A stretch of 64,000 bases of DNA from Callorhinchus milii (taxonomy: Eukaryota). The notes below the pieces were generated by a model. That model made no database searches. It worked only from the letters and a program-made list of their open reading frames with translations, and was not told where the DNA came from. Positions within the stretch are counted from its first letter, which is position 1. Each line of letters begins with the position of its first letter. Location of the stretch: the NCBI RefSeq assembly GCF_018977255.1, contig NW_024704812.1:62001-126000 (forward strand), read 5' to 3'. The position numbers and the translations under genes were made by a program. Of this stretch, positions 19,027-63,431 are shown one piece after another.

Positions 19027-19350
19027 TGTGAACACGCAGTTGTAAAGCTGCTGTGGCTGATCCGTGGTATAATTCAAACACAATCACTGAGTACGAACCG
19101 GAATCAGCCGGAGTCACTGTGTCCAGACGTAGAGTGGCATTGTTGGGGTAAAGCTCAGCCCGACCCTGGTAGTCTCCAAAATATTTCACTGTTGTTCCCT
19201 GTGCTGTTGCGATTGTGGAGCTGGTGTTGGCTTTCCATGATATGCTAAAACTTCCCTGTTCACTGGGCATTACCAGGAAGTACACAGATTGTCCGGCTGT
19301 GGCTTCTATGTGACTCTCAGTAACGGTCAGACTGAAAGCTCCCACCTGCT
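19027..19350 (-). CDS. g2 IgV exon
   Basis: ORF 19019..19372. 324 nt between the ttacag| acceptor and |gtgagt donor; open frame, phase 1-1. Confidence 0.9.
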
Positions 19351-20396
19351 CTGTAACACATAACACACACAACAGTCAATCAATCACAGTGTAATAATAA
19401 TATTAATATTAATCCTTGCATTTGATCTAACGTCTTATCACGTCTTTGAGATGTCTCAAAGCGCTTCACAGAATCTACTGTAAGTTGAATTCACTGTATA
19501 TTTTGTGGGCAAAATTTTGAAGGAATTATTACTCCCAAAAAAAGCGATCCGCCAATCAACTAACAACCGGGTTCCTACTTCCTGCTGGTAAACAGAGGTG
19601 TGTGTGGAGTAAGGAAACTTGCCCAACAATTTGCTCTCCCGGGAATCAAACCAGGTCTCTCACTTGCGAGGCAAGTTCTTTAACCGCTGAGCTACAGGAC
19701 TTTACAATTCAGAACTCTCTCAACTATTCAGTGAGTGAGTAGTAAACTTATTGAACAGGATCCCGATGGAGACAGACGGTGGAAGCAGAAAATGTCATTT
19801 GTTTCAAGATCAACTTTGATAGATTTTTACTGGAAAATAATATCTTGGGATACAGTATATAGACACACACAGACACACAGGAGTTACACACACACACAGA
19901 GACATACACACACAGACACACAGACATAGAGAAGGAATCACACACACACAGAGACACACACACACATAGACAGAGACACACAATCACAGAGAGAGACACA
20001 TACAGAGAGACAGAGACACACACACTGAGAGACAGACACACACACACACAGACAGAGACACACACTGAGAGATAGACACACACATACACAGAGTGAGAGA
20101 GACACACAGTATATAGTTTGTGACACGACATGTCTAGCGACTGCCAGGACGGTGGGAGATGAACGAGATGGACCTTTGCTTATGTTGTTACCAGTAACTC
20201 ACTCAGATTAGTGACCAGAATGAGCAGAGCAGCCACCAACATCCTCGCGGCTGGAAACCACCACATATACACGTTAGGGAGAGAGACAGAGACAAACTGA
20301 ATATGGGCTGTCACCTGAACGCAGGGCAGAGTCTGCTGTTAATCATTACTGTTACTGTAGGGAGACCCTGACACTGGCTCTAATGGCACCCGGTGC

Positions 20397-21832: not shown

Positions 21833-21854
21833 ACCAGAAGAAGATAACAAGAGA

Positions 21855-23836: not shown

Positions 23837-25003
23837 CTACTTCCTGGTGCCATTACGACGTAAATTGTGATAAATATCTTTTTGGTGCTTTCCAAGGTCC
23901 TGAAACACAATGCAGATCGGACAGACCATTACTAACAACAACATTTTATACGGAACCTTTCACATCAGGAGGACGTCCCAAGGACCTGGAGAGTCAGGGA
24001 TTTGGATCTGAGCTGTGGGTTGGGATCAGGACGGGGTGGATGGTGGCGAGGGAGGGGTTAGGAAGGTGACCAGGTTGAGGAGGAAAGTCTTGTGACAGGC
24101 CTTGAAGGAGGTGAGGGAGTGATGAGGTGGGATGGAGGGACTGTGGGATGGAGTTCCAGAGGGTGGGGCAGAGTAACTGAAGGCCCAACCGATGGTGGGG
24201 CAGGTGAGGCGGGGGATGTGAAGCAGGCCGGAGCCCGCTGAGCAGAGAGAGCGGACAGGTTGTTAGGGGGTATGGGGAGCTGCAGAGTTAGTTCTGGATG
24301 ATCTGCAGTTTGTAGAGGGAGGCGTTGGGGAGGCCGACAAGCAGGGAGTGGGCAAAGTCAAGCCTGTTTGTGGTGAACACATGGATGAGGGCCTCGGTGG
24401 CCTGCGGTGAGAGACAGTGGCGGAGCCGGGCAATATGGCGGAGGTGGGGAAGGCATAGCAGGTCATGGTATGGATGAGGGGATGAAGGACAGTTTAGGGT
24501 CGTAAAGGACAGAGGTGGGACAGCAAGAGACTGAGCCGGGCTGACACACTGTCCGTGTCAGCCATTTGTTTCCTCACCATGTAAGGGCCTGAATCCTTCT
24601 GGGAGACATTGGCAGAGGAAGCCTAAAATATAACCAAACACAGTTTAGCTATTCATTAGCAATGTCGTTAGCAGTAAATAATAATAACCATTGCATTTCA
24701 TACAGTGCCTTATCACGTCTTCATAACATCTCAAAGCGCTTCACAGGATACACGGTAAAGAGTAGTGACTGTGTGGTTTCATAATAATAATTGTTGCATT
24801 TGATACAGTGCCTTATCACGTCTTTGAGTCGTATCAAAGGGGAGCCAATTGCCTAAGGTTTTGCCCTGTCCGGGAAACAAAACCGGATCCTCTCGCTTGA
24901 GAGGCGAGGACTCTAACCACTGAGCTACAGGACTGCACAGGACTTACTCTGACATCAATGGTCTCGTAGTATGGTTCACCCTCTGTCTCTTGCTGTGTTT
25001 TGG
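23837..25003 (-). CDS. g3 cytoplasmic exons Cyt1-3 encoding YETI plus the ITAM YMDL-x7-YHNL
   Basis: Exons of 56 nt (phase 1-0), 45 nt (0-0) and 63 nt (0-stop TAG), each with a pyrimidine-rich ag acceptor; the first two end in gtaagt/gtgagg donors. Confidence 0.85.
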
Positions 25004-28000
25004 CTGGAAAATAAACAACAACTTGTTTATTCAAAGGCACAGCCTCTGATGGTGGGATGGAGGGAACGAGGGACAAATAGGAGGCCGGTGTGGGGGCGGT
25101 TGGGGGTGAGCAGGTCGGAGAGGTAGGGAGGTGCCAGGGTATGAAGGGGTTTGAAAACGGGTGAGAGGATCTTGAAATCGTAGAAAATCTTGAAAATAAA
25201 CAAGAGTTTGGTGCTGAACCGGTGAACTTGGAGAGAAACGGAGAGGGAGGGACTGACAGAGAGAGAGAAAGTCAAAGGAGGAATGATTGATAGCGAGAGG
25301 GGGAGATGGATGGATAGAGACTGACAGGGAGTGAGATGGAGGGTGATAGAGAGAGAGGGGTAAAAACTGATAGAAAAGAGTGGGTGAAATGGAGAGGGAG
25401 AGACTGAGAGTGATGGAGGGTGATAGAGAGAAGGGGTAGAGACTGATAGAAAAGAGAGGGTGAAATGGAGGGGGAGAGGCTGATAGAGAGAGAGAGACAA
25501 AGTGGGAGAGACTGATAGTGAAAGAGAGTGAGATGGAGGGGCTAGAGACAGATAGAGAGAGACGGAGGGGTAGAGACTGACAGAGAGAGAGGACAGTGAG
25601 AGGGTGAGTGGCTGAGGGGGGTCTGGGCTGGTATATAAACAACAGAACATGAAGGTGAAAGGTTTTCCTGTGTATATACGGCCTCACCTTCCTTACGTTT
25701 CCTGTAAACGTACAACACAGCGAGTGTTGCAATGACCACCACAGCCACAGCCCCCACTATTGTCCCCACTATCAGGGCCACATTCACTGCGGAGAGAAAC
25801 ACCTTCACTGTCTCTCTATTAGATTATACTCTCGTAACATAGAGACCACAGCACAGACCTCATGTAAATCACATCAATCCTCGCATTTGATACAGCGCCT
25901 TATCACGTCGTTGTAAAATGTAGTAACTGTGTATTTTTTGGGCGGAACACAGCAGCCAATTGCGCACAGCGGTGACCCACAAACAGTTGTGGATTGATTG
26001 ACCAGATTTTTTGTTTTTTTGGAGGATTATGACCCCAGAAAGTGAACCGTCAATTGACTAACAGCGGGTTCCTACCTACTGCTGATAAACAGAGGTGCAC
26101 ATCTGTGTGTGTATGTGTGTCTGCGTGTGTGTGTTTGTGTGTGTGTGTGTCTGTGGGTGTTGTCTGCGGTGGGGTCTATATGTCTGTCTGTGAGTTTGTG
26201 TGTGTCTGTGACTGTGTAAGTGTGTGTGTGTGTGTGTGTGTCTGTGTGTGTGTCAACATATCATAACTTACCTCCGCCTTTCAAAGTCACGTCAAATTGG
26301 AAGAAGTTCTCTCCCATTGCGTTAGTGACATGGCATTGATATGTGCCCTGATCGGTTGCCTGGAATTTACTGATGAGCAGTTTAGAGAAGGTCGGTCCTG
26401 AGGTGATGTTGAACTTGCCGTCAGAGCCAGTGATGGAGTTGTCTTCCTTCGACCATGTAAAGTGTGCGGGCAGCAGGCCAGGGTCTGACACCCGCACTGT
26501 GTCTGTCAGTGACACGTCTAAGGTCACATCTGCCTCCTTCCCCACTTCCACCTGAGGCTCAGACCCTGACGCTCTCTGGGGTTTATCTGTGTAACAGCAC
26601 AGATGGTGTTCAGCAAAACAGCAACACAGTCACCCCAACAGTCAGTAGGAATAATAATAATCCTCCCGTTTGATACAGCGCCTTATCACGCCATCGAGAC
26701 ATCTTAAATCCCATCTAAAGACCTTCCTCTTCGACCAACCGCACCTTCAGCCACCCTCCCACCCCCAACCACCACCACCCCCTGCCCTCCACCCTCCTGA
26801 CCCCAACTCCTAGCTCAGGTCCAAAACCCAGACTATGCAGCGTCCCGGACGTGTTTGCGACGTGAAGGGCGCTTATACAAGTGTAATTTGTCATCGTTGT
26901 TGTTGTTCAGCCCTCAAGTCCTCACCAATGACTATAGAGCATTGACTGTCAGAGACAATATGGCGTCCAACACATGTGAAGATCTCTCGGGAGCTGAGCT
27001 GATCCTTTGTGATGGTGACATTCCCCTCGTTTGTCGCATTGACAATCGTCTGTCCAACCTTCAGCTGAAGGACAGAGTCTGCACCCCACCACCCCAGGAG
27101 CACATCACACCAATGCTGTTCCTTTATCTGGCTGCTCCGCATGTGATCTGCTGTGTGGGAGCCCCTTGAACAAGGCAAAGACAAACCAGTCCGTTATTGG
27201 CTCCACCTTGAGTTGTCCCCACCCTCGCCCGGCTCCACTGGCTCCCAATCCCTCAGAGGATACAGTTCAAGATCCTGGTGCTCAGCTTTAAAGCCCTCCA
27301 TGGCATCACTCCTCCCTCCCTACCTCTGTGACCTCCTAATCCCTGACCACCGGTCCGCTCCCTCTGCTTAGCGGGCTCCGGCCTGCTCCATGTTCCCCGC
27401 CCGCCCATCCCCTTAAGCCTCTCTGCCCCCACCCTCTGAAACTCCCACAATCCCTCTGCCACGCCTCCCTCACCTCCTTCAAAACCTATCTCAAGATCCT
27501 CCTCTTCGACAGACCGTGCTTTCAGTCACCCTCCTACACCCATCTCCCTGCCCTCCAACCCTCCTGATAGCAACCCCAGCTCAGATGTGGGTCCCTGACT
27601 GTCCAGCGCCTTGAGACATCCTCCTGACGTGAAAGCCACTGTGTAAATGCCATGTGTTGTTATTTAGACAGTGCCAATTTTGACTGAGATCTAACTCACT
27701 GTACACGAGGATTGAAACCTTCTCCGGTGTGGCTAATCGTGGTGTAATCATTCTTCACATTGCAAGTGTAATCCCCGCTGTTGTTGAACGTGAGGCTCTC
27801 TATAGGCAGCTGTGAGGTGTTGCCGGCAATGACTGTGGTGTTATGCGTCCACCTGTAGTTACACTCTGGGAACATTTCGTCTGACAGTTGAGCGTCACTA
27901 AATCTCCCTCCTTCCCACAGTACTGTCCTGGGACCAAACTGTCACATATCACCTGCCACTCATATATACTGTGGGTGGATCAGGGCCATCTGAAGAAAAA

Positions 28001-31000
28001 CATTAAGTGATGACATAGATAGATAAATGGATGGCAGATGATAGTGTGAGAGAAACAGCCTTTTTACATGTATCACAGGACTCCGACTGTTTGTGGGTCC
28101 CTCCTGTGCGCAATTGGCTTGCCGTCCCCCGACCCACCCACCCCACCATTGGCGGGAGAGCCTTCAGCCACTCTGCCCCAACCTCTGTAATCCTATCCCC
28201 CAGTCATTCCGCTTCACGCCCTCCTTAGCCTCCTTCAAGTCACGCCTCAAGACCCTCCTCTTCGACCATGCCATCGGCCATCCCCCTTCCCCGCCCCTCC
28301 TTCTCCCCCCGTGACTCCAGCTCGGGTCTGAAATGCTGTCATGTCCAGTGCCTTGGGACATCCTCCCGATGTGAAAGACGCTATACAAATGTAATCCTGT
28401 TGTTGTTGTTGTGTTTCACCCATAAAATATACAGTCAATTCACTTTACAGTATATTCTGTGAAGTGATTTGAGACGTGAGGAGGTGTTTTTTTTGGAGGG
28501 GTTAATACATTCGGAAAAGTGATCGGCAATCGACTAACAAGGGTTTCCGCTTACTGTTAGGTAAACAACAAAATACAACAACAATAATATTACATTTATA
28601 GAGCGTCCTTAACGTCGGGAGGACGTCCCAAGACATTGGCGCTGCTAAACAGTGGGGTGTATGTGTGTGGGGGGGTGGGGGTGGGGGCGAGTGTTGGGTG
28701 GAGTAATGTACCTGCCTAAGCTTTCGTCCTGACCCGCCCGGGAATCAAACCCAGGTCCTCTCGCTTGATAAGGCGATATATCAAGTGCAAGAATGATTAT
28801 TATTCTGATGATCATGACTATGATCATTATTATTGTTATTATCTTTACTGTTATTGCAGCTCAGGTCACGTGAGGCTGACTTTGGGTCATGGAGTTTAAA
28901 GCGAGTCGGGGTTCCTGCTCCTGGTCCCTAAACTCCCTCTCGGGCTCAGGTGTGTGTGTTGCAGTCTAGTGAGGAGATTAGGTTTGTCTGTGGGGCCCTC
29001 TACAGTCAAGTGGCCGATTGACACTCAGATAGTGATGGGATCTTTAACCTGAACAGGCAGATAGTTTAACGTCTCATCCAAACAGCGGCTCTTCAATGAT
29101 AATAACAATAGTGGAGTCCTGTTGCTCAATGGTTAGAGCATTTGCCTCGTAAGTGAACTTGAGTTCAATTCCATCAGGGTCGAATGCTTGGGCAAGTTTC
29201 CTTACTCCACACGCCTGATAATAAACCCTCCAGAAAGAAACTAATAGTAAATTGGTCACTTCAATCCACGGCTGTTTTGGGACGACGCTGTGTGCAATTG
29301 TGTTTCACCCACAAATATACAGTCAATTCACTTTACAATATATTCTGTGAAGCATTTTGAGATGTCTCAAAGACGTAAAGAGCGGGCATCAAATGAAAGG
29401 TTTATTATATTATTTATAGGGCAAAACATTGGGCAAGTTTCCTTACTCCGCACGCCTCTGTTTACCTCGCAGTGTGTGGGGACCCAGTTGTTAGTCGACT
29501 GATGGATCGCTTTTCCGAGGGTAAAAATTCCTTCAAAAAATAATATTAATGAATTGGTCCCTGAATCCCCAACTGTTTGTGGGACACTGCTGTGTGCAAT
29601 TGGTTGACATTTTATGGAGTGGTTATTACCTCCAGAAAGTGATCCGGCAATGAACTGACAAGTAGGTTCATACTTACTGCAGGTCAGCAGAGCCATGTCT
29701 ATGTGTGTTTCTATGAGTGGAGGACTATATGAGTTCCAAGTGCTGACGTGAGGCTTGAACCCACAACCTTCTGACTTATAGAGAGCTGAGCCAGGCTGGA
29801 ACAAGTAGGGATATACGTGGGCCAACTGCACTGTCCTGTTCAGCTCACGTTGATCTGGTTTTAACACAACAGCAAATATACTCACAGTTATCACCAGCTT
29901 CACTGGTTTGCTGCTGTCACTGTTCACCGGGTTACTGGCCGCGCAGATAAACCCTCCACTGTCGTTCCTGTGTACGGGGCTGATTGTCAGAGTGCTATTA
30001 GCTGCAGACAGTGTGTAACGTGGGGTTACAGGTAACGGGTGTCCATCCAGTGCCCAGGAATAGGTGGGGAACAATCCCATCACTGTACACCTCAATGTCG
30101 TTGTGTCTTTATTCTCGATAAATATCTCCTTGTCTGGACTCAGGCTGATGCTCACATTGGACAGCAGAGCTGTAAGATACGGATTTACTTTACTTAACAC
30201 AAAGCTGTTCTGCTTCAGTTCAAGATCCTGGTCCTCACCTTCAATGTCCTCTACAACCTCACTCCTCTCTCCTTACCTCCGCTCCCTCTGCTCAGCGGGC
30301 TCCGGCCTGCTTCATGCCCCCGCCCACCTGCCCCACCATCAGCGGTTGGGCCTTCAGCCTCTCTGCCCCAATCCACGACTGTTTGTGGGACACTGCTGTG
30401 TGCAATTGGCTGCAGAGTTTCGCCCACAAAATAGACCGGCAATTCACTTTACAGTATATCGTCCCAAAATACATCACTTTGCACTTCTCCACATTAAACT
30501 TCATCATGTCTGCCCATGTTACCAGTCTGTCTATGTCCTCTTGCAGTCTGTTACTCTCCTCCTCACTGTTTACTACTTTTCTTAGCTTAGTATCATGTGT
30601 GTGGCTCCTGATCTCACACACACTAAACTCTGTACCCCAGTCCTGCCCAGGCTCCAAACTTGGCAATTGTGCTCTCTATACCCAAGTCCAGGCCACCTTA
30701 AAGACCCATTTCAAGGCCTTCCTCTTCGACCGGCCATGCCTCCAGTCATCCTTCTATTCCAACCCTACCCGCCCTCCACCCCTCCTTATCCCAACCCCCA
30801 CCTCGAGTGCGGATCCCTGACTATCCAGTGCCTTGGGACGTCGTCCTGATATGAAAGCCACTGTTGTTGTTTACACCATGACATTTTTGACTGAGATAAC
30901 TAACTCACTGTACACGAGGATTGAAACCTTCTCCGTGCGGCTAATCGTGGTGTAATCATTCTTCACATTGCAAGTGTAATCCCCGCTGTTGTTGAACGTG

Positions 31001-34000
31001 AGGCTCTCTATAGGCAGCTGTGAGGTGTTGCCGGCAATGACTGTGGTTTATGTGTCCACCTGTAGTTACACTCTGGGAAACATTTCGTCTGACAGTTGAG
31101 GGTCATCAAATCTCCCTCCTTCCCACAGTACTGTCCTGGGACCAAACTGTCACATATCACCTGCCCACTCACAATAAAGGTGAGTGGATCAGGGCCATCT
31201 GAAAGAAAAAGCATTAAACTATGACACAGATAGATAAATGGGATGGCAGATGATAGTGTGAGAGAAACAGTCTTTTTACATGTATCACAGACCTCTGACT
31301 GTTTGTGGGTCGCTGCTGTGTGCAATTGGCTGCTGCGTTTTGCTCATAACATATACAGTCAATTCACTTTACAGTATATTCTGTGAAGCGTTTCAGTCGT
31401 CCAGAAGATGTGAAAAGCACTGTTATCAAATGCAAGGATTATTATATTATTGATAGAGCAAAACGTCGGCCAAGTTTCTCTCCTCCCAAACACACCCTCT
31501 GTTTACTGAGCAGTAATTAGGAACCCGGTTATTAGTCGATTGGTGAGAATCAAACCAAAGTCCTCCCACTTGCGAGGTGAGGGCTCCAACCACTACAGGA
31601 CCCCACTGTTTGTTCCTCTATTCACAGCATCAAACCCCAATGTAGAATATTCCAGCATTGCATTGGAGCTTCAGTCTGGACTACATGAGTTCCAAGTACT
31701 GACGTGAACCCACAACCTTCTGACTTATAGAGAGCTGAGCCAGCTGAACAAGTAGGGATATACGTGGGCCAACTGCACTGTCCTGTTCAGCCTCACGTTG
31801 ATCTGGTTTTAACACAACAGCAAATATACTCACAAGTTATCACCAGCTTCACTGGTTTAACTGCTGTCACTGCCCACCAGGTGACTGGCCGTGCAGATAA
31901 ACCCTCCACTGTCGCTCCTGTGTACGGGGTGATTGTCAGAGTGCTATTATCTGCAGACAGTGTGTAACGTGGGGTTACAGGTAACGGTGTCCATCCAGTG
32001 CCCAGGAATAGGTGGGGAACGATCCCATTGCTGTACATCTTAGTGTCACTGTGTCTTTATTCTCGATAAATATCTCCTTGTCTGGACTCAGACTGATGCT
32101 CACATTGGACACCGGAGCTGTAAGATAACGCGTTTCATTTCATTCAGAAACTTGTTCAGATTCACTTCACTGACACAAACTTGTTCGGAGTCACTTTGCT
32201 GAACCCTACACTTTATTTCTGACGCTGTTTGTTATGATTCACTGTTTATTCAGGTCTCAGTCTGGCTCATTTGGTAGCACAATGTTATGGTTTAAAGCCC
32301 CACTCTTGGAGCTCACAGTCCAGGTTTATTGGCTTAATGAATGAAATGAAATGGGCCCGGGGGCCGGATGCGGCCCGTGGGCCACCAGTTGGCCCACCCT
32401 GCTCTCCCGATGCTCTGAAGCCAGGGTGGCTGCCGTGGGCCGGATTCCCCTATTTGTCAAAGATCCACGAGCCACATCCAACCTGAGGCCATTTCCACTC
32501 CCTCCCTCCCTCCCTCCCTGGTCAGCGGCAGGAGCTGATGGTTGGGAAGACCCAGCGACCAGAGCCTTTACTGCAGTCTTCAAGGAGAGCAAGCAAATAC
32601 GTCGCTGTTCCTCACACTCCCCCTCCCTCTCCCCCCCTCCCTCTCTCTGCCCCCACTCTTTTTCACTCCCCTCTCTCCCCCCTCTCTTTCTCCCCCCCCC
32701 TCCCTTGCTCCCAAGATCCACTGGCACTTGCCTGGCTTTCCTATCACACACTAAACTCTGTAACCCATCACCCCCGCCCTCACCAGACCCCACTGGCTCC
32801 TTAATCACACACTAAACTCTGTACCCCATCACCTGAGCCCTCGCCAGGCCCCACTGGGTCCCTATCACACACTATACTCTGTACCCCATCACCTCCGCCC
32901 TCGCCCCCGCCCTCGCCAGGCCCCACTGGCTCCCTATCACACACTAAACTCTGTACCCCATCACCCCCGCCCTCGCCAGGCCCCACTGGCTCCCTATCAC
33001 ACACTAAACTCTGTACCCCATCACCCCCGCCCTCGCCAGGCCCCACTGGCTCCCTATCACACACTAAACTCTGTACCCCATCACCCCCGCCCTCGCCAGG
33101 CTCCACTGTTTCCGTATCACCAAACAGATCGATTTTGAGATCATCTCACTCGTTTTCAAATCCCTTCATGCCATGGTACTGCCCTAAACTCTCCGACCTG
33201 CTCACCCACCCACTGCACTCTCGGTGCCTCCTCTTGGCTGGTTCCATCCTTGTCTTGTTTTTCCCTCGTCCCCTCCACTCCACCATCAATGGCTGTGTCT
33301 TCAGCCACTGCGTCACTTTCTCCCTCAATCCCAACGCCTCGCCCCTCCCTCCCCACCTTCAAATCGCACCTAAAGACCTTCCATTTTGATCGTGTTTACA
33401 GTCACCGCCTTCCTCTCCCTCTCCCCCCCCGGGTCGGGGTCAGACTCGGCCCCTGCAAAGTGCTCCGGGACACTCCGCGTGAAGGGCGCTGTTGTTGTTA
33501 CTCACTGTGAACACGCAGTTGTAAATCTGCTGAGGCTGCTCCGAGATTAAGTCAAACACAGACACTGAGTACGAACCGGAATCAGCCGGAGTCACTGGTG
33601 TCCAGACGTAGAGTGGCATTGTTGGGGTAAGCTCAGCCCGACCCTGGTAGTCTCCATAGTACTTCACTGCTGTTCCTTTGCTGATGCGATTGTGGAGCTG
33701 GTGTGACTTTCCATATTATACTAAAATTTCCCAGTTTCACTGGGCATTACCAGGAAGTACACAGATAGTCCGGCTGTGGCTTCTATCTGACTCTCAGTGA
33801 CGGTCAGACTGAAAGCTCCCACCTGCTCTGTAATACAAAACACACACAACAGTCAATCACCAAATATCACAATGTAATAATAATATTCATCCTTGCATTT
33901 GATCTCGCGTCTTATCACGTCTTTGAGATGTCTCAAAGCGCTTCACAGAATTACTGTAAGGTGAATTGACTATATTTGTGGACAAAAGTTTTGAAGGAAT

Positions 34001-40103: not shown

Positions 40104-40149
<46 letters not shown>

Positions 40150-50490: not shown

Positions 50491-51435
50491 AAGACACACT
50501 TTACGCCCTCACTATTTTTAATATTATTATAATAATAGTCCTTGCGTTTGACGCAGCGCCTTATCACGTTTTTGAGATGTCTCAAAGCACTTCACAGAAT
50601 ACACTGTGAATTGTAGTGACTGTGGTTTGGTGCGCGATACGCGGCAGCTAATTGCGCACAGCAATGAATAGTAATAATAGTAATTCTTGCAAAAAAGACA
50701 AATTGGTCACTTCAATCCGCAACTGTTTGTGGGGCACCTCTGTGCACGTGCAATTAATTGGCTGCTGACTAACAAGCGAGGTCCTACTTACTGCTTGGTA
50801 AACAGAGGCAAACGCGTGTNNNNNNNNNNNNNNNNNNNNNNNNNNNNNNNNNNNNNNNNNNNNNNNNNNNNNNNNNNNNNNNNNNNNNNNNNNNNNNNNN
50901 NNNNNNNNNNNNNNNNNNNNNNNNNNNNNNNNNNNNNNNNNNNNNNNNNCTACGTTTCACCCTGAATACTGAACTCCTGGTAAAATAACATTAACTTCTC
51001 AGTGAGCCGATAAGTCACAACAACAACAACTTGTATTTACACCAGCGCCCTTTATGAGGGTAGCGTCTCGGAGTGGTGGAGCCTGACGCAGAGCCAGTTG
51101 GAGGGGAGATACAGGCAGAAGGTGACCGTGAGCATGGTCAAAGAGAAAGATTTTCAGTCTTGATCTAAAAGAGGGGGAAGGATAGGAGAGGGGAGGAAAG
51201 GGGGAAAGGCGGAGGGATCGGTGGAGAGAGCTCCAAAGTCTGACAATACGACCCCCCATGATGGATCAGAGGGCACGAGGGACACGCAGGAGGCCGGAGG
51301 CAGCCGAGAGGAGGCAGTGGGTAGTGGGTTGGGGGGGTCAGCAGGTCGGAGAGAGAGGTAGGGAGGTGCCAGAGCCTGAAGAGATTTGTAGATGATTGAA
51401 AGGATCTTGAAATCGATCTACGTTGTCACAGCTAT

Positions 51436-53049
51436 CTACTTCCTGGTGCCATTACGACGTAAATTGTGATAAATATCTTTTTGGTGCTTTCCAAGGTCCT
51501 GAAACACAATGCAGATCGGACAGACCATTACTAACAACATTTTACACTGAACCTTTCACATCAGGAGGACGTCCCAAGGACCTGGACAGTCAGGGATTTG
51601 GATCTGAGCTGTGGGTTGGGATCAGGACGGGGTGGATGGTGGCGAGGTAGGGGTTAGGAAGGTGACCAGGTTGAAGAGGAAAGTCTTGTGACAGGCCTTG
51701 AAGGAGGTGAGGGAGTGATGGGGTGGGATGGAGGGACTGTGGGATGGAGTTCCAGAGGGTGGGGCAGAGTAACTGAAGGCCCAACCGATGGTGGGGCAGG
51801 TGAGGCGGGGGATGTGAAGCAGGCCGGAGCCCGCTGAGCAGAGAGAGCGGACAGGTTGTTAGGGGGTATGGGGAGCTGCAGAGTTAGTTCTGGATGATCT
51901 GCAGTTTGTAGAGGGAGGCGTTGGGGAGGCCGACAAGCAGGGAGGGGGCAAAGTCAAGCCTGTTTGTGGTGAACACATGGATGAGGGCCTCGGTGGCCTG
52001 TGGTGAGAGACAGTGGCGGAGCCGGGCCATATGGCGGAGGTGGGGAAGGCATATCAGGTCATGGCACGGATGAGGGGATGAAGGACAGTTTAGGGTCGTA
52101 AAGGACAGAGTTGGGACAGCAAGAGACTGAGCCGGGCTGACACACTGTCCGTGTCAGCCATTTGTTTCCTCACCATGTAAGGGCCTGAATCCTTCTGGGA
52201 GACATTGGCAGAGAAGCCTAAAATATAACCAAACACAGTTTAGCTATTCATTAGCAATGTCGTTAGCAGTAAATAATAATAACCATTGCATTTCATACAG
52301 TGCCTTATCACGTCTTCATAACATCTCAAAGCGCTTCACAGGATACAACAACAACAACAACAAGATTCCATTTATAAAGCGCCTTTCACGTCAGGAGGAC
52401 GTCCCAAGCGCTGCACAGTTGGGTCATGACCCGAGCAGGGGGGAAATGGTCAGGGTAAGGGGAGGGAAGGGAGGGAGCGAGGAGGGGGAAGAGAGTCGAG
52501 AGGGGAGCTGAAGGCTCGGTCAAAGAGAAAGGTTTTGAGACCGGCCTTGAAGGAGGAAAGGGAGGAAGCGGCGAAGGCACTGGGGGATAGAGTTCCAGAG
52601 CCTGGGGGCTGAGAGGCTGAAGGCCCGACCACCGATGGTAGGGCGATTGGGGCGGGGGACGTGGAGCAGACCGGAGCCAGAGGAACGGAGGGTACGGGCA
52701 GGTAGGTAGGGGGATAGTAGGTTGGAGAGGTAGGAGGGAGCAAGGCCGTGAATGGCCTTGTAGGTGAGGATGAGGATCTTGAAATCTTGATACACGGTAA
52801 AGAGTAGTGACTGTGTGGTTTCAAAAATAATAATAATCGTTGCATTTGATACAGTGCCTTATCACGTCTTTGAGTCGTATCAAAGGGGAGTCAATTGCCT
52901 AAGGTTTTGCCCTGTCCGGGAAACAAAACCGGATCCTCTCGCTTGAGAGGCGAGGGCTCTAACCACTGAGCTACAGGACTGCACAGCACTTACTCTGACA
53001 TCAATGGTCTCGTAGTATGGTTCACCCTCTGTCTCTTGCTGTGTTTTGG
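51436..53049 (-). CDS. g5 cytoplasmic exons Cyt1-3 (YETI plus ITAM; Cyt2 is 1 nt short as assembled)
   Basis: Exons of 56, 44 and 63 nt; gagaagcc vs gaggaagcc in paralogs. Confidence 0.75.
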
Positions 53050-54549
53050 CTGGAAAATAAACAACAACTTGTTTATTCAAAGGCACAGCCTCTGATGGTG
53101 GGATGGAGGGAACGAGGGACAAATAGGAGGCCGGTGTGGGGGCGGTGGGGGGTGAGCAGGTCGGAGAGGTAGGGAGGTGCCAGGGCATGAAGGGGTTTGA
53201 AAACGAGTGAGAGGATCTTGAAATCGTAGAAAATCTTGAAAATATACAAGAGTTTGTACATTTGCTGAACCGGTGAACTTGGAGAGAAACGGAGAAGGAG
53301 GCACTGATAGAGAGACAGAGAGAGAGAGAGAGATTGGTAGTGAGAGATAGGGTTAAAGCCTGACAGAAAGACAAAGAGGGAGCGATTGAAAGAGAGAGGG
53401 GGAGATGGATGGATAGAGACTGATAGAGAGTGAGATGGAGGGTGATAGAGAGACAGGGGTAGAGGCTGATAGAAAGGAGAGGGTGAAATGGAGTGGGAGA
53501 GACTGATAGAGAGAGAGAGAAAGATGGAGGGGGAGAGACTGATGGAGGAAGAGTGAGACGGAGAGGGTAGAGACTGATTGAGTTTGTGATGGAGGTGGAT
53601 AGAGACTAATAGAGGGAGTGTGAGACAGAGGGGAAGAGACTGACAGAGTGAGATAAAGAGGGAGAGACTGAAAGTGAGAGAGAGTGAGACGGAGGAGGAG
53701 TGATTGATAGCGAGAGGGGGAGATGGATGGATAGAGACTGACAGAGAGTGAGATGGAGGGTGATAGAGAGAGAGGGGTAGAAACTGATAGAAAAGAGTGG
53801 GTGAAATGGAGAGGGAGAGACTGAGAGTGATGGAGGGTGACAGAGAGAAGGGGTAGAGACTGATAGAAAAGAGAGGGTGAAATGGAGGGGGAGAGGCTGA
53901 TAGAGAGAGAGAGACAAAGTGGGAGAGACTGATAGTGAAAGAGAGTGAGATGGAGGGGCTAGAGACAGATAGAGAGAGACGGAGGGGTAGAGACTGGCAG
54001 AGAGAGAGGACAGTGAGAGGGTGAGTGGCTGAGGGGGTCTGGACTGGTATATAAACAACAGAACATGAAGGTGAAAGGTTTTCCTGTGTATATACGGCCT
54101 CACCTTCCTTACGTTTCCTGTAAACGTACACCACAGCGAGTGTTGCAATGACCACCACAGCCACAGCCCCCACTATTGTCCCCACTATCAGGGCCACATT
54201 CACTGCGGAGAGAAACACCTTCACTGTCTCTCTATTAGATTATACTCTCGTAACACAGAGACCACAGCACAGACCTCATGTAAATCATAGCAATCCTCGC
54301 ATTTGATACAGCGCCTTATCACGTTGTTGTAAAGTGTAGTAACTGTGTATTTTGTGGGCGGAACACAGCAGCCAATTGCGCACAGCGGTGACCCACAAAC
54401 AGTCGTGGATTGATTGACCAGATTTTTTGTTTTTTTGGAGGGATTATGACCCCCAGAAAGTGAACCGTCAATTGACTAACAGCGGGTTCCTACCTTCTGC
54501 TGATAAACAGAGGTGCACATCTGTGTGTGTATGTGTGTCTATGTGTGTC

Positions 54550-54580
<31 letters not shown>

Positions 54581-57500
54581 CTGTGGTTGTGTGTCTGTGT
54601 GTGTGTCAAAATATCATAACTTACCTCCGCCTTTCAAAGTCACGTCAAATTGGAAGAAGTTCTCTCCCATTGCGTTAGTGACACGGCATTGATATGTGCC
54701 CTGATCGGTTGCCTGGAATTTACTGATGAGCAGTTTAGAGAAGGTTAGTCCTGAGGTGATGTTGAACTTGCCGTCAGAGCCAGTGATGGAGTTGTCTTCC
54801 TTCGACCATGTAAAGTGTGCGGGCAGCAGGCCAGGGTCTGACACCCGCACTGTGTCTGTCAGTGACACGTCTAAGGTCACATCTGCCTCCTTCCCCACTT
54901 CCACCTGAGGCTCAGACCCTGACGCTCTCTGGGGTTTATCTGTGTAACAGCACAGACAGTGTTCAGCAAAACAGCAACACAGTCACCCCAACAGTCAGTA
55001 GGAATAATAATAATCCTCCTGTTTGATACAGCGCCTTATCACGCCATCGAGACATCTTAAATCCCATCTAAAGACCTTCCTCTTCGACCAACCGCACATT
55101 CAGCCACCCTCCCACCCCAAAACCCACCCCCCTGTCCTCCACCCCTCCTGCCCCCAACTCCCAGCTCAGGTCCAAAAACCCTGACTGTGCAGCGTCCTGG
55201 AACATCTTTGCGACGTGAAGGGCGCTATACAAGTGTAATTTGTCATCGTTGTTGCTGTTCAGCCCTCAAGTCCTCACCAATAACTATAGAGCATTGACTG
55301 TCAGAGACAACATGGCGTCCAACACATGTGAAGATCTCTCGGGAGCTGAGCTGATCCTTTGTGATGGTGACATTCCCCTCGTTTGTCGCATTGACAATCG
55401 TCTGTCCGACCTTCAGCTGAAGGACAGAGTCTGGCACCCCACCAGCCCAGGAGCACATCAACACCAATGCTGTTCCTTTATCTGCTGCTCCGCATGTGAT
55501 CTGCTGTGTGGGAGCCCCTTGAACAAGGCAAAGACAAACAGTCCAGTTATTGGCTCCACCTTGAGTTGTCCCCACCCTCGCCCGGCTCCACTGGCTCCCC
55601 ATCCCTCAGAGGATACTGTTCAAGATCCTGGTGCTCAGCTTTAAAGCCCTCCATGGCCTCACTCCTCCCTCCCTACCTCTGTGACCTCCTAATCCCTGAC
55701 CAACCGGTCCGCTCCCTCTGCTTAGCGGGCTCCGGCCTGCTCCATGTTCCCCGCCCGCCCATCCCCTTCAGCCTCTCTGACCCACCCTCTGAAACTCCCA
55801 CAATCCCTCTGCCACGCCTCCCTCACCTCCTTCGAAACCTATCTCAAGATCCTCCTCTTCGACAGACCGTGCCTTCGGTCACCCTCCTACACCCATCTCC
55901 CTGCCCTCCAACCCTCCTGATAGCAACCCCAGCTCAGATGTGGGTCCCTGACTGTCCAGCGCCTTGAGACATCCTCCTGACGTGAAAGCCACTGTGTAAA
56001 TGCCATGTGTTGTTATTTAGACAGTGCCAATTTTGACTGAGATCTAACTCACTGTACACGAGGATTGAAACCTTCTCCGTGTGGCTAATCGTGGTGTAAT
56101 CATTCTTCACATTGCAAGTGTAATCCCCGCTGTTGTTGAACGTGAGGCTCTCTATAGGCAGCTGTGAGGTGTTGCCGGCAATGACTGTGGTGTTATGTGT
56201 CCACCTGTAGTTACACTCTGGGAAACATTTCGTCTGACAGTTGAGCGTCACTAAATCTCCCTCCTTCCCACAGTACTGTCCTGGGACCAAACTGTCACAT
56301 ATCACCTGCCCACTCATATATACTGTGGGTGGATCAGGGCCATCTGAAAGAAAAACATTAAGTGATGACATAGATAGATAAATGGGTGGCAGATGATAGT
56401 GTGAGAGAAACAGCCTTTTTACATGTATCACAGACCTCCGACTGTTTGTGGGTCCCTCCTGTGCGCAATTGGCTGCCGTCCCCCGACCCACCCACCCCAC
56501 CATTGGCGGGAGAGACTTCAGCCACTCTGCCCCCAACCTCTGGAATCCTATCCCCCAGTCATTCCGCTTCACGCCCTCCTTAGCCTCCTTCAAGTCACGC
56601 CTCAAGACCCTCCTCTTCGACCATGCCATCGGCCATCCCCCTTCCCCGCCCCTCCCTTCTCCCCCCGTGACTCCAGCTCGGGTCTGAAATGCTGTCACTG
56701 TCCAGTGCCTTGGGACATCCTCCCGATGTGAAACACGCTATACAAATGTAATCCTGTTGTTGTTGTTGTGTTTCATCCATAAAATATACAGTCAATTCAC
56801 TTTACAGTATATTCTGTGAAGTGATTTGAGACGTGAGGAGGTGTTTTTTTTGGAGGGGTTAATACATTCGGAAAAGTGATCTGGCAATCGACTAACAAGG
56901 GTTCCCGCTTACTGTTAGGTAAACAACAAAATACAACAACAATAATATTACATTTATAGGGCGTCCTTAACGTCGGGAGGACGTCCCAAGACATTGGCGC
57001 TGCTAAACAGTGGGGTGTATGTGTGTGGGGGGGTGGGGGTGGGGGCGAGTGTTGGGTGGAGTAATGTACCTGCCTAAGCTTTCGTCCTGACCTGCGCGGG
57101 AATCAAACCCAGGTCCTCTCGCTTGATAAGGCGATATATCAAGTGCAAGAATGATTATTATTCTGATGATCATGACTATGATCATTATTATTGTTATTAT
57201 CTTTACTGTTATTGCAGCTCAGGTCACGTGAGGCTGACTTTGGGTCATGGAGTTTAAAGCGAGTCGGGGTTCCTGCTCCTGGTCCCTAAACTCCCTCTCG
57301 GGCTCAAGTGTGGGTGTTGCAGTCTGGTGGGGAGATTAGGTTTGTCTGTGGGGCCCTCTACAGTCAAGTGGCCGATTGACACTCAGATAGTGATGGGATC
57401 TTTAACCTGAACAGGCAGATAGTTTAACGTCTCATCCAAACAGCGGCTCTTCAATGATAATAACAATAGTGGAGTCCTGTTGCTCAGTGGTTAGAGCATT

Positions 57501-60500
57501 TGCCTCGTAAGTGAACTTGAGTTCAATTCCCATCAGGGTGCGAATGCTTGGGCAAGTTTCCTTACTCCACACGCCTGATAATAACCCCTCCAGAAAGAAA
57601 CTAATAGTAAATTGGGCACTTCAATCCACGGCTGTTTTGGGACGACGCTGTGTGCAATTGTGTTTCACCCACAAATATACAGTCAATTCACTTTACAATA
57701 TATTCTGTGAAGCATTTTGAGTTGTCTCAAAGACGTAAAGAGCGCGGCATCAAATGAAAGGTTTATTATATTATTTATAGGGCAAAACATTGGGCAAGTT
57801 TCCTTACTCCGCACGCCTCTGTTTACCTCGCAGTGTGTGGGGACCCAGTTGTTAGTCGACTGATGGATCGCTTTTCCGAGGGTAAAAATTCCTTCAAAAA
57901 ATAATATTAATGAATTGGTCCCTGAATCCCCAACTGTTTGTGGGACACTGCTGTGTGCAATTGGTTGACATTTTATGGAGTGGTTATTACCTCCAGAAAG
58001 TGATCCGGCAATGAACTGACAAGTAGGTTCCCACTTACTGCAGGTCAGCAGAGCCATGTCTATGTGTGTTTCTATGAGTGGAGGAAGGACTATATGAGTT
58101 CCAAGTGCTGACGTGAGGCTTGAACCCACAACCTTCTGCCTTATAGAGAGCTGAGCCAGGCTGGAACAAGTAGGGATATACGTGGGCCAACTGCACTGTC
58201 CTGTTCAGCTCACGTTGATCTGGTTTTAACACCACAGCAAATATACTCACAAGTTATCACCAGCTTCACTGGTTTGCTGCTGTCACTGTTCACCGGGTTA
58301 CTGGCCGTGCAGATAAACCCTCCACTGTCGTTCCTGTGTACGGGGCTGATTGTCAGAGTGCTATTAGCTGCAGACAGTGTGTAACGTGGGGTTACAGGTA
58401 ACGGGTGTCCACCAGTGCCCAGGAATAGGTGGGGAACAATCCCATCGCTGTACACCTCAATGTCGCTGTGTCTTTATTCTCGATAAATATCTCCTTGTCT
58501 GGACTCAGGCTGATGCTCACATTGGACAGCAGAGCTGTAAGATAAAGTGTTTCATTTCATCCGGATTTACTTTACTTAACACAAAGCTGTTCTGCTTCAG
58601 TTCAAGATCCTGGTCCTCACCTTGAATGTCCTCTACAACCTCACTCCTCTTCCTTACCTCCGCTCCCTCTGCTCAGCGGGCTCCGGCCTGCTTCATGCCC
58701 CCCGCCCACCTGCCCCACCATCAGCGGTTGGGCCTTCAGCCTCTCTGCCCCAATCCACGACTGTTTGTGGGACACTGCTGTGTGCAATTGGCTGCAGAGT
58801 TTCGCCCACAAAATAGACCGGCAATTCACTTTACAGTATATCGTCCCAAAATACATCACTTTGCACTTCTCCACATTAAACTTCATCATGTCTGCCCATG
58901 TTACCAGTCTGTCTATGTCCTCTTGCAGTCTGTTACTCTCCTCCTCACTGTTTACTACTTTTCTTAGCTTAGTATCATGTGTGTGGCTCCTGATCACACA
59001 CTAAACTCTGTACCCCCATCACCCCAGTCCTGCCCAGGCTCCAAACTTGGCAATTGTGCTCTCTATACCCAAGTCCAGGCCACCTTAAAGACCCATTTCA
59101 AGGCCTTCCTCTTCGACCGGCCATGCCTCCAGTCATCCTTCTATTCCAACCCTACCCGCCCTCCACCCCTCCTTATCCCAACCCCCACCTCGAGTGCGGA
59201 TCCCTGACTATCCAGTGCCTTGGGACGTCGTCCTGATATGAAAGCCACTGTTGTTGTTTACACCATGACATTTTTGACTGAGATAACTAACTCACTGTAC
59301 ACGAGGATTGAAACCTTCTCCGTGCGGCTAATCGTGGTGTAATCATTCTTCACATTGCAAGTGTAATCCCCGCTGTTGTTGAACGTGAGGCTCTCTATAG
59401 GCAGCTGTGAGGTGTTGCCGGCAATGACTGTGGTGTTATGTGTCCACCTGTAGTTACACTCTGGGAAACATTTCGTCTGACAGTTGAGGGTCATCAAATC
59501 TCCCTCCTTCCCACAGTACTGTCCTGGGACCAAACTGTCACATATCACCTGCCCACTCACAATAAAGGTGAGTGGATCAGGGCCATCTGAAAGAAAAAGC
59601 ATTAAACTATGGCATAGATAGATAAATGGATGGCAGATGATAGTGTGAGAGAAACAGTCTTTTTACATGTATCACAGACCTCTGACTGTTTGTGGGTCGC
59701 TGCTGTGTGCAATTGGCTGCTGCGTTTTGCTCATAACATATACAGTCAATTCACTTTACAGTGTATTCTGTGAAGCGTTTCAGTCGTCCAGAAGACGTGA
59801 AAAGCGCTGTATCAAATGCAAGGATTATTATATTATTGATAGAGAAAAACGTCGGCCAAGTTTCCCTACTCCCAAACTCTGTTGACTGAGCAGTAATTAG
59901 GAACCCGGTTATTGGTCGATTGGTGGGAATCAAACCAAAGTCCTCTCACTTGCGAGGTGAGGGCTCCAACCACTACAGGACCCCACTGTTTGTTTCTCTA
60001 TTCACAGCATCAAACCCCAATGTAGAATATTCCAGCATTGCATTGGAGCTTCAGTCTGGACTACATGAGTTCCAAGTACTGACGTGAGGCCACAACCTTC
60101 TGACTTATAGAGAGCTGAGCCAGGCTGGAACAAGTAGGGATATACGTGGGCCAACTGCACTGTCCTGTTCAGCTCACGTTGATCTGGTTTTAACACAACA
60201 GCAAATATACTCACAAGTTATCACCAGCTTCACTGGTTTGCTGCTGTCACTGCCCACCAGGTGACTGGCCGTGCAGATAAACCCTCCACTGTCGCTCCTG
60301 TGTACGGGGCTGATTGTCAGAGTGCTATTATCTGCAGACAGTGTGTAACGTGGGGTTACAGGTAACGGGTGTCCATCCAGTGCCCAGGAATAGGTGGGGA
60401 ACGATCCCATTGCTGTACATCTTAGTGTCACTGTGTCTTTATTCTCGATAAATATCTCCTTGTCTGGACTCAGGCTGATGCTCACATTGGACACCGGAGC

Positions 60501-63431
60501 TGTAAGATAACGCGTTTCATTTCATTCAGAAACTTGTTCAGATTCACTTCACTGACACAGACCTGTTCAGAGTCACTTTGCTGAACCCTACACTTTATTT
60601 CTGACGCTGTTTGTTATGATTCACTGTTTATTCAGGTCTCAGTCTGGCTCATTTGGAAGCACAATGTTATGGTTTAAAGCCCCACTCTTGGAGCTCACAG
60701 TCCAGGTTTATTGGCTTAATGAATGAAATGAAATGGGCCCGGGGGCCGGATGCGGCCCGTGGGCCACCAGTTGGCCCACCCTGCTCTCACCGATGCTCTG
60801 AAGCAGGGTGGCTGCCGTGGGCCGGATTCCCCTATTTGTCAAAGATCCACGAGCCACATCCAACCTGAGGCCATTTCCACTCCCTCCCTCCCTCCCTCCC
60901 TCCCTGGTCAGCGGCAGGAGCTGATGGTTGGGAAGACCCAGCGACCAGAGCCTTTACTGCAGTCTGTCAGGAGAGCAGAGCAAATACGTCGCTGTTCCTC
61001 ACACTCCCCCTCCCTCTCCCCCCCTCCCTCTCTCTGCCCCCACTCTTTTTCACTCCCCTCTCTCCCCCCTCTCTTTCTCCCCCCCCCTCCCTTGCTCCCA
61101 AGATCCACTGGCACTTGCCTGGCTTTCCTATCACACACTAAACTCTGTAACCCATCACCCCCGCCCTCACCAGACCCCACTGGCTCCCTATCACACACTA
61201 AACTCTGTACCCCATCACCTGAGCCCTCGCCAGGCCCCACTGGCTCCCTATCACACACTAAACTCTGTACCCCATCACCCCCGCCCTCACCAGACCCCAC
61301 TGGCTCCTTAATCACACACTAAACTCTGTACCCCATCACCCCCGCCCTCGCCAGGCCCCACTGGCTCCCTATCACACACTAAACTCTGTACCCCATCACC
61401 CCCGCCCTCGCCAGGCTCCACTGTTTCCGTATCACCAAACAGATCGATTTTGAGATCATCTCACTCGTTTTCAAATCCCTTCATGCCATGGTACTGCCCT
61501 AACTCTCCGACCTGCTCACCCACCCACTGCACCTCTCGGTGCCTCCTCTTGGCTGGTTCCATCCTTGTCTTGTTTGTCCCTCGTCCCCTCCACTCCACCA
61601 TCAATGGCTGTGTCTTCAGCCACTGCGTCACTTTCTCCCTCAATCCCAACGCCTCGCCCCTCCCTCCCCACCTTCAAATCGCACCTAAAGACCTTCCATT
61701 TTGATCGTGTTTACAGTCACCGCCTTCCTCTCCCTCTCCCCCCCCGGGTCGGGGTCAGACTCGGCCCCTGCAAAGTGCTCCGGGACACTCCGCGTGAAGG
61801 GCGCTGTTGTTGTTTACTCACTGTGAACACGCAGTTGTAAATCTGCTGAGGCTGCTCCGAGGATTAAGTCAAACACAGACACTGAGTACGAACCGGAATC
61901 AGCCGGAGTCACTGTGTCCAGACGTAGAGTGGCATTGTTGGGGTAAAGCTCAGCCCGACCCTGGTAGTCTCCAAAGTACTTCACTGCTGTTCCCTTTGCT
62001 GATGCGATTGTGGAGCTGGTGTTGACTTTCCATATTATACTAAAATTTCCCAGTTCACTGGGCATTACCAGGAAGTACACAGATTGTCCGGCTGTGGCTT
62101 CTATCTGACTCTCAGTGACGGTCAGACTGAAAGCTCCCACCTGCTCTGTAATACAAAACACACACAACAGTCAATCACCAAATATCACAATGTAATAATA
62201 ATATTCATCCTTGCATTTGATCTAACGTCTTATCACGTCTTTGAGATGTCTCAAAGCGCTTCACAGAATTACTGTCAGGTGAATTGACTATATTTGTGGA
62301 CAAAAGTTTTGAAGGAATTATTACCCCCAGAAAAGCAATCCGCCAATCGACTAACAACCAGGTTTCTACTTACTTCTGATAAACAGAGGCGTGTGGGTAC
62401 GTGTGAAGTAAGGAAACTTGCCCAACGTTTCCCCCAGAGGGGAAGCGAACCCAGATCTCTCACTTACAAGGTGAGCGCTCTTACCACTGAACTACAGAAC
62501 TGCACAATTCAGAAAATGTCATTTGTTTAAGATGAAAGATAGATTTAGATAGATTTCTGCTAGAAAATAATAGCTTGGGATACAGTAGATAGACCCACAG
62601 ATACACACAGAAAGACATAGAGAGAGAGGAGACAGACACATACACACACACCGAGACAGAGACACACACACAGAGGCAGAGAGAGGTACCATTTGTGTAG
62701 CGACTTTCACGTCGGGAGGATATCTCATAGATAGACACACTCACAGACACAGAGAGTCACTCACACACATAGAGAGACACACACAGGCACATCCACAAAC
62801 ACACAGAGAAGGAGACACAGACACACAACGACACACAGACACTCACAAACAGAGAGATACACAGACAAACAGACACTCACAAACAGAGAGATACACAGAC
62901 AAACAGAGACACACATAGACACTCACAAATGCATATAGAGAGACACACACACACACTCATACACACGCGGACACAGAGACACACACACACTCACAAACTG
63001 AGAGAAACACACACACTCACAAACAGAGACACAGACACACACACTGAGAGACAGAAACACAGACACACACAGAGAGCGACACATACACAGAGACACACAG
63101 AGAGACACATACAGAAAGACATAGATACACGCGGATAGATAGAGAAACATACCGAGAGACAGACACCCCCCAGATAATCACACACACACACACACAGACA
63201 GAGACATACACTGTGAGACAGACACACACATCCAGACAGAGATATATATACACACACACACAGTGGGAGACACACACAGTATATAGTTTGGGACATGTCG
63301 AACGACTGCCAGGACGGTGGGAGATGAACGAGATGGACCTTTGCTTATGTTGTTACCAGTAACTCACCCAAATTAGTGACCAGAATGAGCAGAGCAGCCA
63401 CCAACATCCTCGCGGCTGGAAACCACCACAT
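51436..63431 (-). CDS. g5: 7-Ig ITAM-bearing CEACAM/VSIG10L-like receptor (V-C1-C2-C1'-C2'-C3-C4-TM-tail)
   Basis: Exons: leader 63431-63368; V 62145-61822; C1 60499-60215; C2 59586-59296; C1' 58534-58251 (-1); C2' 56343-56053; C3 55517-55278; C4 54939-54625; TM 54202-54104; Cyt1 53049-52994; Cyt2 52217-52174 (-1); Cyt3 51498-51436. C1 resembles CEACAM A domains ([24 protein letters not shown], |YGPD junction into C2). Confidence 0.82.
52348..52788 (-). mobile_element. Young 5'-truncated L2 insertion with 6-bp target-site duplication (GATACA)
   Basis: gataca at 52342-52347 and 52789-52794; empty site caggatacacggtaaag in g3 and g4; (TTG)n tail. Confidence 0.88.
54104..54202 (-). CDS. g5 TM exon
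   Basis: 99 nt; hydrophobic span with GxxxG (GTIVG) and no charged residue. Confidence 0.9.
61822..62145 (-). CDS. g5 IgV exon
   Basis: ORF 61814..62167. 324 nt, open. Confidence 0.9.

Follow-up and report, generated by a model that had tools for sequence, protein, structure and literature searches.

Introduction

In mammalian CEACAMs, the GFCC'C'' face of the amino-terminal V-type domain (N domain) is the site at which both partner molecules and bacterial adhesins bind (PMC8013792). Work on primate CEACAMs has revealed recurrent positive selection at the adhesin-bound surface together with gene conversion of extracellular domains between paralogues (Baker et al. 2022, PMC8860441), and in the N exons of Xenopus ceacam genes non-synonymous changes accumulate in CC'C'' and FG, the sequence between the two is conserved, and gene conversion leaves tracts free of synonymous change (PMC5112662). 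CEACAMs are already known in cartilaginous fishes, and our literature search found no paper analysing selection on CEACAMs in a shark or chimaera. Here, we describe an array of CEACAM-like genes in the holocephalan Callorhinchus milii. The stretch analyzed (the window) comprises 64,000 nucleotides (nt) of scaffold MU249885.1 (GCA_018977255.1, positions 62001-126000), and coordinates below are window positions unless stated otherwise. Within it, five paralogues, g1 to g5, are arranged head to tail, all on the minus strand, and their tails carry the immunoreceptor tyrosine-based activation motif (ITAM). Each copy consists of a leader, an N domain of V type that lacks the usual disulfide, between four and six C2-type immunoglobulin (Ig) domains, a transmembrane (TM) segment and an ITAM tail.

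The C. milii array resembles the Xenopus ceacam paired-receptor families (Zimmermann and Kammerer 2016, PMC5112662) in possessing tandem genes and ITAM-bearing members. It differs from them in belonging to a cartilaginous fish, in having variable blocks that re-assort as separate cassettes, and in encoding between four and six C2 domains, among them an internally duplicated C1-C2 pair. No ITIM-bearing partner gene (encoding the inhibitory counterpart of the ITAM) was seen in the DNA read. The primate proteins have established ligands, among them Opa and HopQ, effects on binding have been measured, and whole N domains have been converted (PMC8860441), whereas in C. milii exchange takes place within the N exon. 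The N domain of human CEACAM1 (e.g. PDB 2GK2) likewise adopts a V-type fold without a disulfide. Its alignment to the C. milii domain pairs W38 of the latter with W33, R63 with R64 and D82 with D82, with identical numbering through F-G, but the two are only ~20-25% identical and the C-C' region of the C. milii domain is four residues shorter. Activating decoys of the CEACAM3 type (PMC7026191, PMC11646289) also combine a fast-evolving CEACAM1-like N domain with an ITAM or ITAM-like tail. CEACAM3, however, has just one Ig domain, and its N domain tracks that of a known inhibitory counterpart, whereas the C. milii genes encode long ectodomains and no inhibitory counterpart was identified for them in the DNA read.

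The array thus extends a pattern that is already documented in frogs and mammals, and its existence is not a surprise. What is added here is the re-assortment of cassettes, the clustering of synonymous differences, and doubt about the integrity of individual copies. We consider it probable that the pattern reflects concerted evolution overlaid by diversifying selection on the ligand specificity of an array of activating receptors. Should the selection signal prove sound, the CEACAM pattern is present in a holocephalan, from the earliest-branching lineage of living jawed vertebrates; this would point to pressure on this face dating back to the origin of the family rather than arising in tetrapods. 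The array also provides a set of natural V variants with which to search for the first ligands or microbes bound by a CEACAM of a cartilaginous fish.

Results and Discussion

V exons differ in two cassettes that flank an invariant block

The first-pass annotation of this DNA had proposed that V-domain diversity is confined to the predicted C-C'-C''/F-G face, that the C3, C4, TM and tail exons are homogenized, and that the diversity results from diversifying selection. In our numbering the Q of the QVGAF motif is codon 1, and the residue numbers of that annotation equal ours minus 4. All exons described below lie on the minus strand.

The V exon of g5 (61822-62145) is intact, as is that of g4 (48907-49227), which is one codon shorter; the V exon of g2 (19027-19350) has an open frame. 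In the comparison of g2 with g5, 15 of the 107 residues encoded by the exon differ (codons 13, 31, 33, 37, 40, 48, 50, 53, 89, 92, 94, 95, 97, 99 and 101), and 14 of these fall, as had been claimed, within residues 27-49 and 85-97 of the earlier numbering (codons 31-53 and 89-101). The intervening residues 55-84 (codons 59-88, DYQGR...GSYSV), reported as identical in g2, g4 and g5, are identical also at every nucleotide. An invariant run as long as the 35 residues observed between g2 and g5 was matched in 2.5% of random placements of 15 differences. The V exon can be described as two variable cassettes separated by a 90-nt block. In g5, cassette A (codons 31-58; 61970-62053) encodes the BC loop plus strands C, C' and C'', the invariant block (codons 59-88; 61880-61969) encodes D-E-F, and cassette B (codons 89-101; 61841-61879) runs from the end of F through the FG loop into the start of G. 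The g2 cassettes occupy 19175-19258 (A) and 19046-19084 (B).

Four more loci of the same scaffold contributed eight extra V exons (g6-g10 and h1-h3), giving a sample of 13 V copies. The D-E-F block is nearly unchanged in all twelve g5-type copies and nt-identical in most of them, and 30 residues are variable among the seven distinct intact V sequences.

Variable residues map to the predicted C-C'-C''/F-G sheet

An AlphaFold (AF2) model of the g5 V domain, built from 29 aligned sequences with a mean predicted local distance difference test score (pLDDT) of 94.4, is a V-type sandwich with strands A (7-9), A' (13-16), B (22-28), C (35-40), C' (44-50), C'' (53-56), D (64-67), E (72-75), F (84-92) and G (96-106). 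On this model the contrary outcome named in the first-pass annotation, variable sites on buried or opposite-face positions, did not occur: 24 of the 30 variable residues lie on strands C, C', C'', F or G or in the BC, CC', C'C'' or FG loops, while none of the 18 residues of strands A, B, E and D is variable (Fisher 3e-5). Within strands the variable positions alternate (35/37/39, 89/91 and 97/99/101) around the core residues W38, Y86 and L102, and the core-facing positions 36 and 40 undergo conservative changes only (I/V and V/A). This alternation, together with homology, indicates that the variable positions would form the outer face of the predicted sheet.

The variable sites coincide with the binding surface known for CEACAM1. 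The CEACAM1 residues considered, which contact adhesins or are relevant to binding, were F29, G30, Y31, S32, Y34, D40, G41, Q44, T56, Q89, I91, S93, D94, L95, V96 and N97 (PMC8013792). Their C. milii equivalents vary at 12 of 16 positions (p 3e-5), namely those corresponding to G30, Y31, S32, Y34, G41, Q44, Q89, I91, S93, D94, L95 and N97.

N-glycosylation sequons on the variable face are gained and lost between copies, at codons 33-35, 41-43 and 55-57 (in g5, 62039-62047, 62015-62023 and 61973-61981). N33-F-S is present in g4, g5 and g10 and not in g2, g7 and g8; N41-T-S has been lost from g4 and g10, and N55-Y-S has been gained in the same two copies via two substitutions.

The assignment of these domains to the CEACAM family rests on profile searches and on conserved residues. 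In a search with a profile of the V family, CEACAM1, CEA and CEACAM6 headed the matches (E 1e-24 to 1e-18), and the alignment covered 100 residues of the N domain; human CEACAM1 was the best match (E 1e-24), its N domain being covered end to end, and a single V sequence used as query gave E 1e-4 only. Foldseek against the PDB recovered the V-type fold with no CEACAM specificity, the V domains of PD-L1, VCBP and TIGIT outranking CEA. No copy has a cysteine in the B strand (SVYFLV) or the F strand (GSYSV). Across the 29 aligned V domains D82 is invariant, R63 is nearly so, and G84 and Y86 are conserved; R63 and D82 align to R64 and D82 of CEACAM1. In CEACAM N domains the Arg64-Asp82 pair forms a salt bridge. 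Every ectodomain exon contains an Ig domain by Pfam, with C1-C4 matching Ig_3, I-set, Ig_2 and ig.

Concerted evolution of the remainder of the gene

The constant part of the gene is far more uniform than the cassettes. Between g2 and g5, C3 is identical (80/80 residues) and C4 differs at 2 of 88, both as described in the first-pass annotation; C1 differs at 2 of 92 residues rather than at about 3. Homogenization of TM and tail holds for g3, g4 and g5 (TM 98-100%), whereas in g2 it applies to the later tail exons only, the TM exon being missing and the first tail exon just 82% identical.

Identities along the gene were taken from local BLAST chains. A global MAFFT alignment of the V-flanking introns was discarded: it forced non-homologous short interspersed element (SINE) and microsatellite insertions together and yielded meaningless divergences of 25-50%. 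In comparisons of g5 with g2 and g4, the promoter and leader are 93-98% identical, intron 1 is 77-85% identical, intron 2 is 79-91% identical, and the stretch from C3 to TM, introns included, is 95-98% identical. Since the introns between C3 and TM are homogenized along with the exons, the 3' half of the gene has been shaped at the DNA level, by concerted evolution, beyond any constraint on the protein. The V framework gives a similar picture. The genes g2, g4 and g5 show seven synonymous differences, all but one of which fall within the two cassettes, so that the framework has 1 in 66 codons and the cassettes have 6 in 41 codons; with the framework synonymously near-invariant, amino-acid constraint alone is insufficient to explain its uniformity.

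The two cassettes are also combined differently in different copies. The g4 and g10 exons have no differences in cassette A and 7 in the 39 nt of cassette B, and both h3 and g6 have the g5 cassette B with a different cassette A. Four-gamete conflicts are found in 21 of 64 comparisons between cassettes versus 5 of 120 within cassette A, and a PHI-like permutation test for recombination is significant (p 0.018). Because synonymous differences cluster in the same blocks and these blocks re-assort among copies, gene conversion is part of the cause of the pattern, and it inflates the significance of tree-based tests.

Two further observations concern exchange. The RefSeq proteins XP_007882908/9, from an older assembly, unite a g4-type C-C'-C'' with a g2-type F-G in one V domain, which is either a new combination or an assembly collapse. 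In g1 (127-2075), 98% identity to g3 and g5 extends over the leader, the promoter and a large part of intron 1, and the V domain is ~50% identical in protein with saturated dS, marking a sharp conversion boundary or an exon replacement.

Tests of selection on the V exon

Pairwise Nei-Gojobori estimates of omega (dN/dS) for the whole V exon among g2, g4 and g5 range from 1.3 to 2.9, on small counts. A maximum-likelihood analysis of 11 distinct V sequences under model M0 gave a whole-V omega of 3.0-3.6 and rejected omega = 1 (2dlnL, twice the log-likelihood difference, 9.1-11.9; p 0.0006-0.003), a result unaffected by the choice among three codon-frequency models or by restriction to intact copies. 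For the F-G segment, analyzed on its own tree, omega reached its upper bound (p 0.001 or less). The framework segment (omega 1.2-1.4) has very few changes and is not significant, and the C exons, on much shorter trees, have omega 0.65-1.7, none different from 1. The comparison of M1a with M2a gave 2dlnL of 31-32, with 21-30% of sites at omega 11-15; it was made with a custom implementation that reproduces the IQ-TREE M0 likelihood. The positive sites under M2a (33, 35, 37, 39, 45, 48, 53, 57, 58, 72, 89, 91-94, 97 and 101) all lie inside the two cassettes except codon 72, which is altered only in the frameshifted g6. The M1a/M2a comparison is biased by recombination and by variation in the synonymous rate, and we therefore do not rely on it.

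The dN/dS values on these strands were not at or below 1, the result that the first-pass annotation had named as contrary to its proposal. Strong purifying selection on the face is excluded, positive selection on F-G is well supported, and positive selection on C-C'-C'' is suggestive. Diversifying selection, as originally proposed, is partly supported: omega significantly exceeds 1 for the whole V exon and for F-G, and not for C-C'-C'' alone or in the tree-free count described below.

We propose that gene conversion or unequal crossing-over would keep the promoter and leader, the C3-C4-TM-tail region with its introns, and the V framework near-identical among copies. The two V cassettes (codons 31-58 and 89-101) would escape this homogenization and stay different, changing chiefly by substitutions that alter amino acids, most clearly in F-G, and recombination inside the invariant 90-nt D-E-F block may re-assort them among copies. 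Together, the cassettes would constitute the exposed GFCC'C'' sheet.

Several points weigh against selection for diversity on this face. The C-C'-C'' segment alone, on its own tree, has omega 1.6-1.8 and is not significant. A tree-free minimum count gives 38 non-synonymous to 7 synonymous changes (omega ~1.8, p 0.12). Recombination and between-site variation in the synonymous rate inflate the single-tree M0 and M2a tests, and the cassette boundaries were picked post hoc, a problem from which the whole-exon test is free. Exposure of the side chains is judged from homology and from the alternation along strands. The g2 gene is probably non-functional, and the frameshifts seen in several copies may or may not be real. 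Finally, the face would be a ligand-binding surface by analogy with mammalian CEACAMs, and it has no known ligand.

We regard as unlikely a neutral mosaic, in which purifying selection and frequent conversion maintain the framework and the cassettes are unconstrained surface that drifts at omega ~1 and retains older divergence, in an array with many decaying pseudogenes. Such drift would suit the nucleotide divergence of the cassettes (13-23% for g2-g5 and g4-g5), which is near the 9-23% of the flanking introns, the clustering of synonymous differences in the cassettes, the non-significant C-C'-C'' and tree-free results, and the broken frames of g2, g3, g6, g9 and h2; it does not suit F-G, where 15 or more amino-acid state changes stand against at most one synonymous change and omega = 1 is rejected, nor a whole-exon omega of ~3 (p 0.003 or less). 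Simple relaxation also does not predict that the exposed positions of the A, B, E and D strands should be invariant (0/18), and the coincidence of variable sites with CEACAM1 contact positions likewise speaks against it. Mutational hot spots of the hypermutation type might also produce such clustering.

Where diversifying selection is accepted, its agent may be microbial. That it was instead driven by endogenous partners, whether homophilic or heterophilic, paired receptors as in CD2/SLAM, or nectin-like, strikes us as distinctly improbable. The CEACAM GFCC'C'' face does mediate homophilic and heterophilic host contacts (PMC8013792; PMC9525683), and the V domains of PD-L1, TIGIT, nectin and CAR returned by the fold search bind host partners via the same face. 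Endogenous ligand pairs, however, usually co-evolve under constraint, without many variants in one array, and every tail seen here is activating, which fits decoy or phagocytic receptors; the data at hand do not separate an endogenous from a microbial driver.

Transcription of the array

RNA and DNA sequencing runs were examined as Logan contigs, which are too short to establish g2-specific expression or to settle the frameshifts. RNA contigs are spliced exactly at the V borders 19027 and 19350/19351, that is, at both borders of the g2 exon. One RNA contig corresponds exactly to cassette B (F-G) of g7, and g2-type V sequence that continues into its intron is present in contigs of other runs.

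A spliced RNA contig (19084-19351) combines the g5-type cassette A with H13 and Q31, a combination that none of the 13 collected copies has, and it is at least 4 nt from each of these germline V exons. It could represent an unsampled copy, an allele of another individual, or a further mosaic. We give hardly any credence to the broader idea that the array is a two-cassette shuffling system, with the 90-nt D-E-F block as recombination hinge, the frameshifted V exons (g3, g6, g9 and h2) as donors, and exchange that is possibly somatic. Were exchange also somatic, as in the pseudogene conversion of chicken and rabbit Ig, an innate ITAM receptor would gain combinatorial diversity; against a somatic origin of the H13/Q31 contig, the array has been sampled in part and the RNA may come from another individual.

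Integrity of the copies

Broken frames are found in g2, g3, g6, g9 and h2. In g2, the C4 exon (13268-13566) ends at a deletion junction (~13285). The deletion takes out the TM exon, so that the end of C4 now abuts sequence lying shortly upstream of the first tail exon, and the frame across the junction reads ...DVTSNPFMP and then a stop. The g2 C2 exon (14738-15027) has a 1-nt deletion, a G missing from GATTTGATG at 14935/6 in a non-homopolymer context, as well as a Cys-to-Gly change. A contig from another run has the base at this site, but such contigs derive from paralogues. Older RefSeq models in which a g2-type V is accompanied by an unbroken C2 were set aside as evidence on the status of g2, their C2 sequence being different. 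On its sequence, g2 is most likely a pseudogene or a gene for a secreted variant.

The g3 V exon (33506-33827) is of the g5 type, and two substitutions and six 1-nt indels leave its frame broken. Over the larger block shared by the two genes (26179-35680 versus 54530-64000), g3 and g5 are ~98.5% identical by substitutions, with 105 substitutions and 49 one-base indels in 6.9 kb, 32 of the indels in homopolymer context. This ratio suggests consensus errors as much as decay. An indel excess of this kind is typical of an unpolished long-read consensus, and the V exons of g6, g9 and h2 have like indels. In g5, the tail exon cy2 has a CC-to-C deletion (~52213/52214) relative to g2, g3 and g4, which shifts the frame just before the ITAM. 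This deletion is an assembly error or a true loss of signaling; RefSeq models with the g5 V have an intact tail. Pseudogene calls on this scaffold require read-level confirmation.

That the cassette combinations and part of the diversity arose from mis-joined or poorly polished repeats is very improbable: the g3-g5 indels, the g5 tail deletion, the three N gaps and the older RefSeq models with another V combination lend it some color, but the V variants are distinguished by substitutions, not indels, at sites that are shared and structured, the g7 cassette and g2-type V sequence are recovered in contigs from different runs, and g2- and g4-type cassettes recur in models from an older, independent assembly.

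Organization of the genes and of the scaffold

The scaffold is unplaced, is 260 kb long, and is composed of array copies. Positions 57099-64000 of the window are an exact match to a locus retrieved from this record. The V exons and all other exons have AG/GT borders and are in phase 1-1. The g5 V exon is 100% identical to the V of RefSeq XP_042201586/591-593, proteins that are named 'CEACAM1-like', 'VSIG10-like' or 'hemicentin-1-like'. The V exon of g1 (127-453) is only ~50% identical in protein, and the remainder of g1 lies outside the window. The g5 leader exon occupies 63368-63431, with homologues beginning at 50300 (g4), 35112 (g3), 20266 (g2) and 1922 (g1); the leader and ~250 nt upstream are almost identical across all five genes.

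Downstream of its V exon, g5 has C1 (Ig C2-type; 60215-60499), C2 (59296-59586), an internal duplicate pair consisting of C1' (58251-58534, with a 1-nt frameshift) and C2' (56053-56343), C3 (55278-55517; 97-100% nt identity among 10 copies) and C4 (54625-54918; 98.6-100% nt identity among 9 copies). The internal C1'-C2' duplication is whole in g3 and g5, and the number of domains consequently varies between copies. In g4, an extra C1-like exon (47387-47655), truncated and frameshifted, lies upstream of C1.

The g5 TM exon (54104-54202) has borders taken from RefSeq models; that of g4 is identical, that of g3 differs at one residue, and g2 has none. The g5 tail exons span 51439-53049 (cy1, 52994-53049; cy2, ~52180-52224; last exon, 51439-51495). 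Jointly, in both the RefSeq models and the window exons, the tail exons encode YMDL-x7-YHNL, an ITAM. The motif is divided between two exons (YM | DL...YHNL), not three, its second half and the stop codon forming one continuous exon in every copy (11840-11896, 23840-23896, 38689-38745 and 51439-51495). The last ITAM exon of g2 has three substitutions (NL..., ...NGPGK).

One of the three N gaps in the window, at 50820-50949, is intergenic: it falls in the stretch separating the stop codon of g5 (51439) from the start codon of g4 (50300). It lies inside no exon, and the reading frame is therefore not at issue. None of the comparisons in the first-pass annotation spans it, and only the adjacency of g4 and g5 depends on the scaffold join. 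Since the homologous interval between g3 and g2 is ~2.4 kb longer, sequence may be missing at this gap.

At scaffold positions 211940-236093 the array is partly inverted, with h1 on the strand of the window genes and h2 and h3 on the opposite strand. The V exon of h1 equals that of g5, and h1 and h2 are arranged head to head, ~1.3 kb apart.

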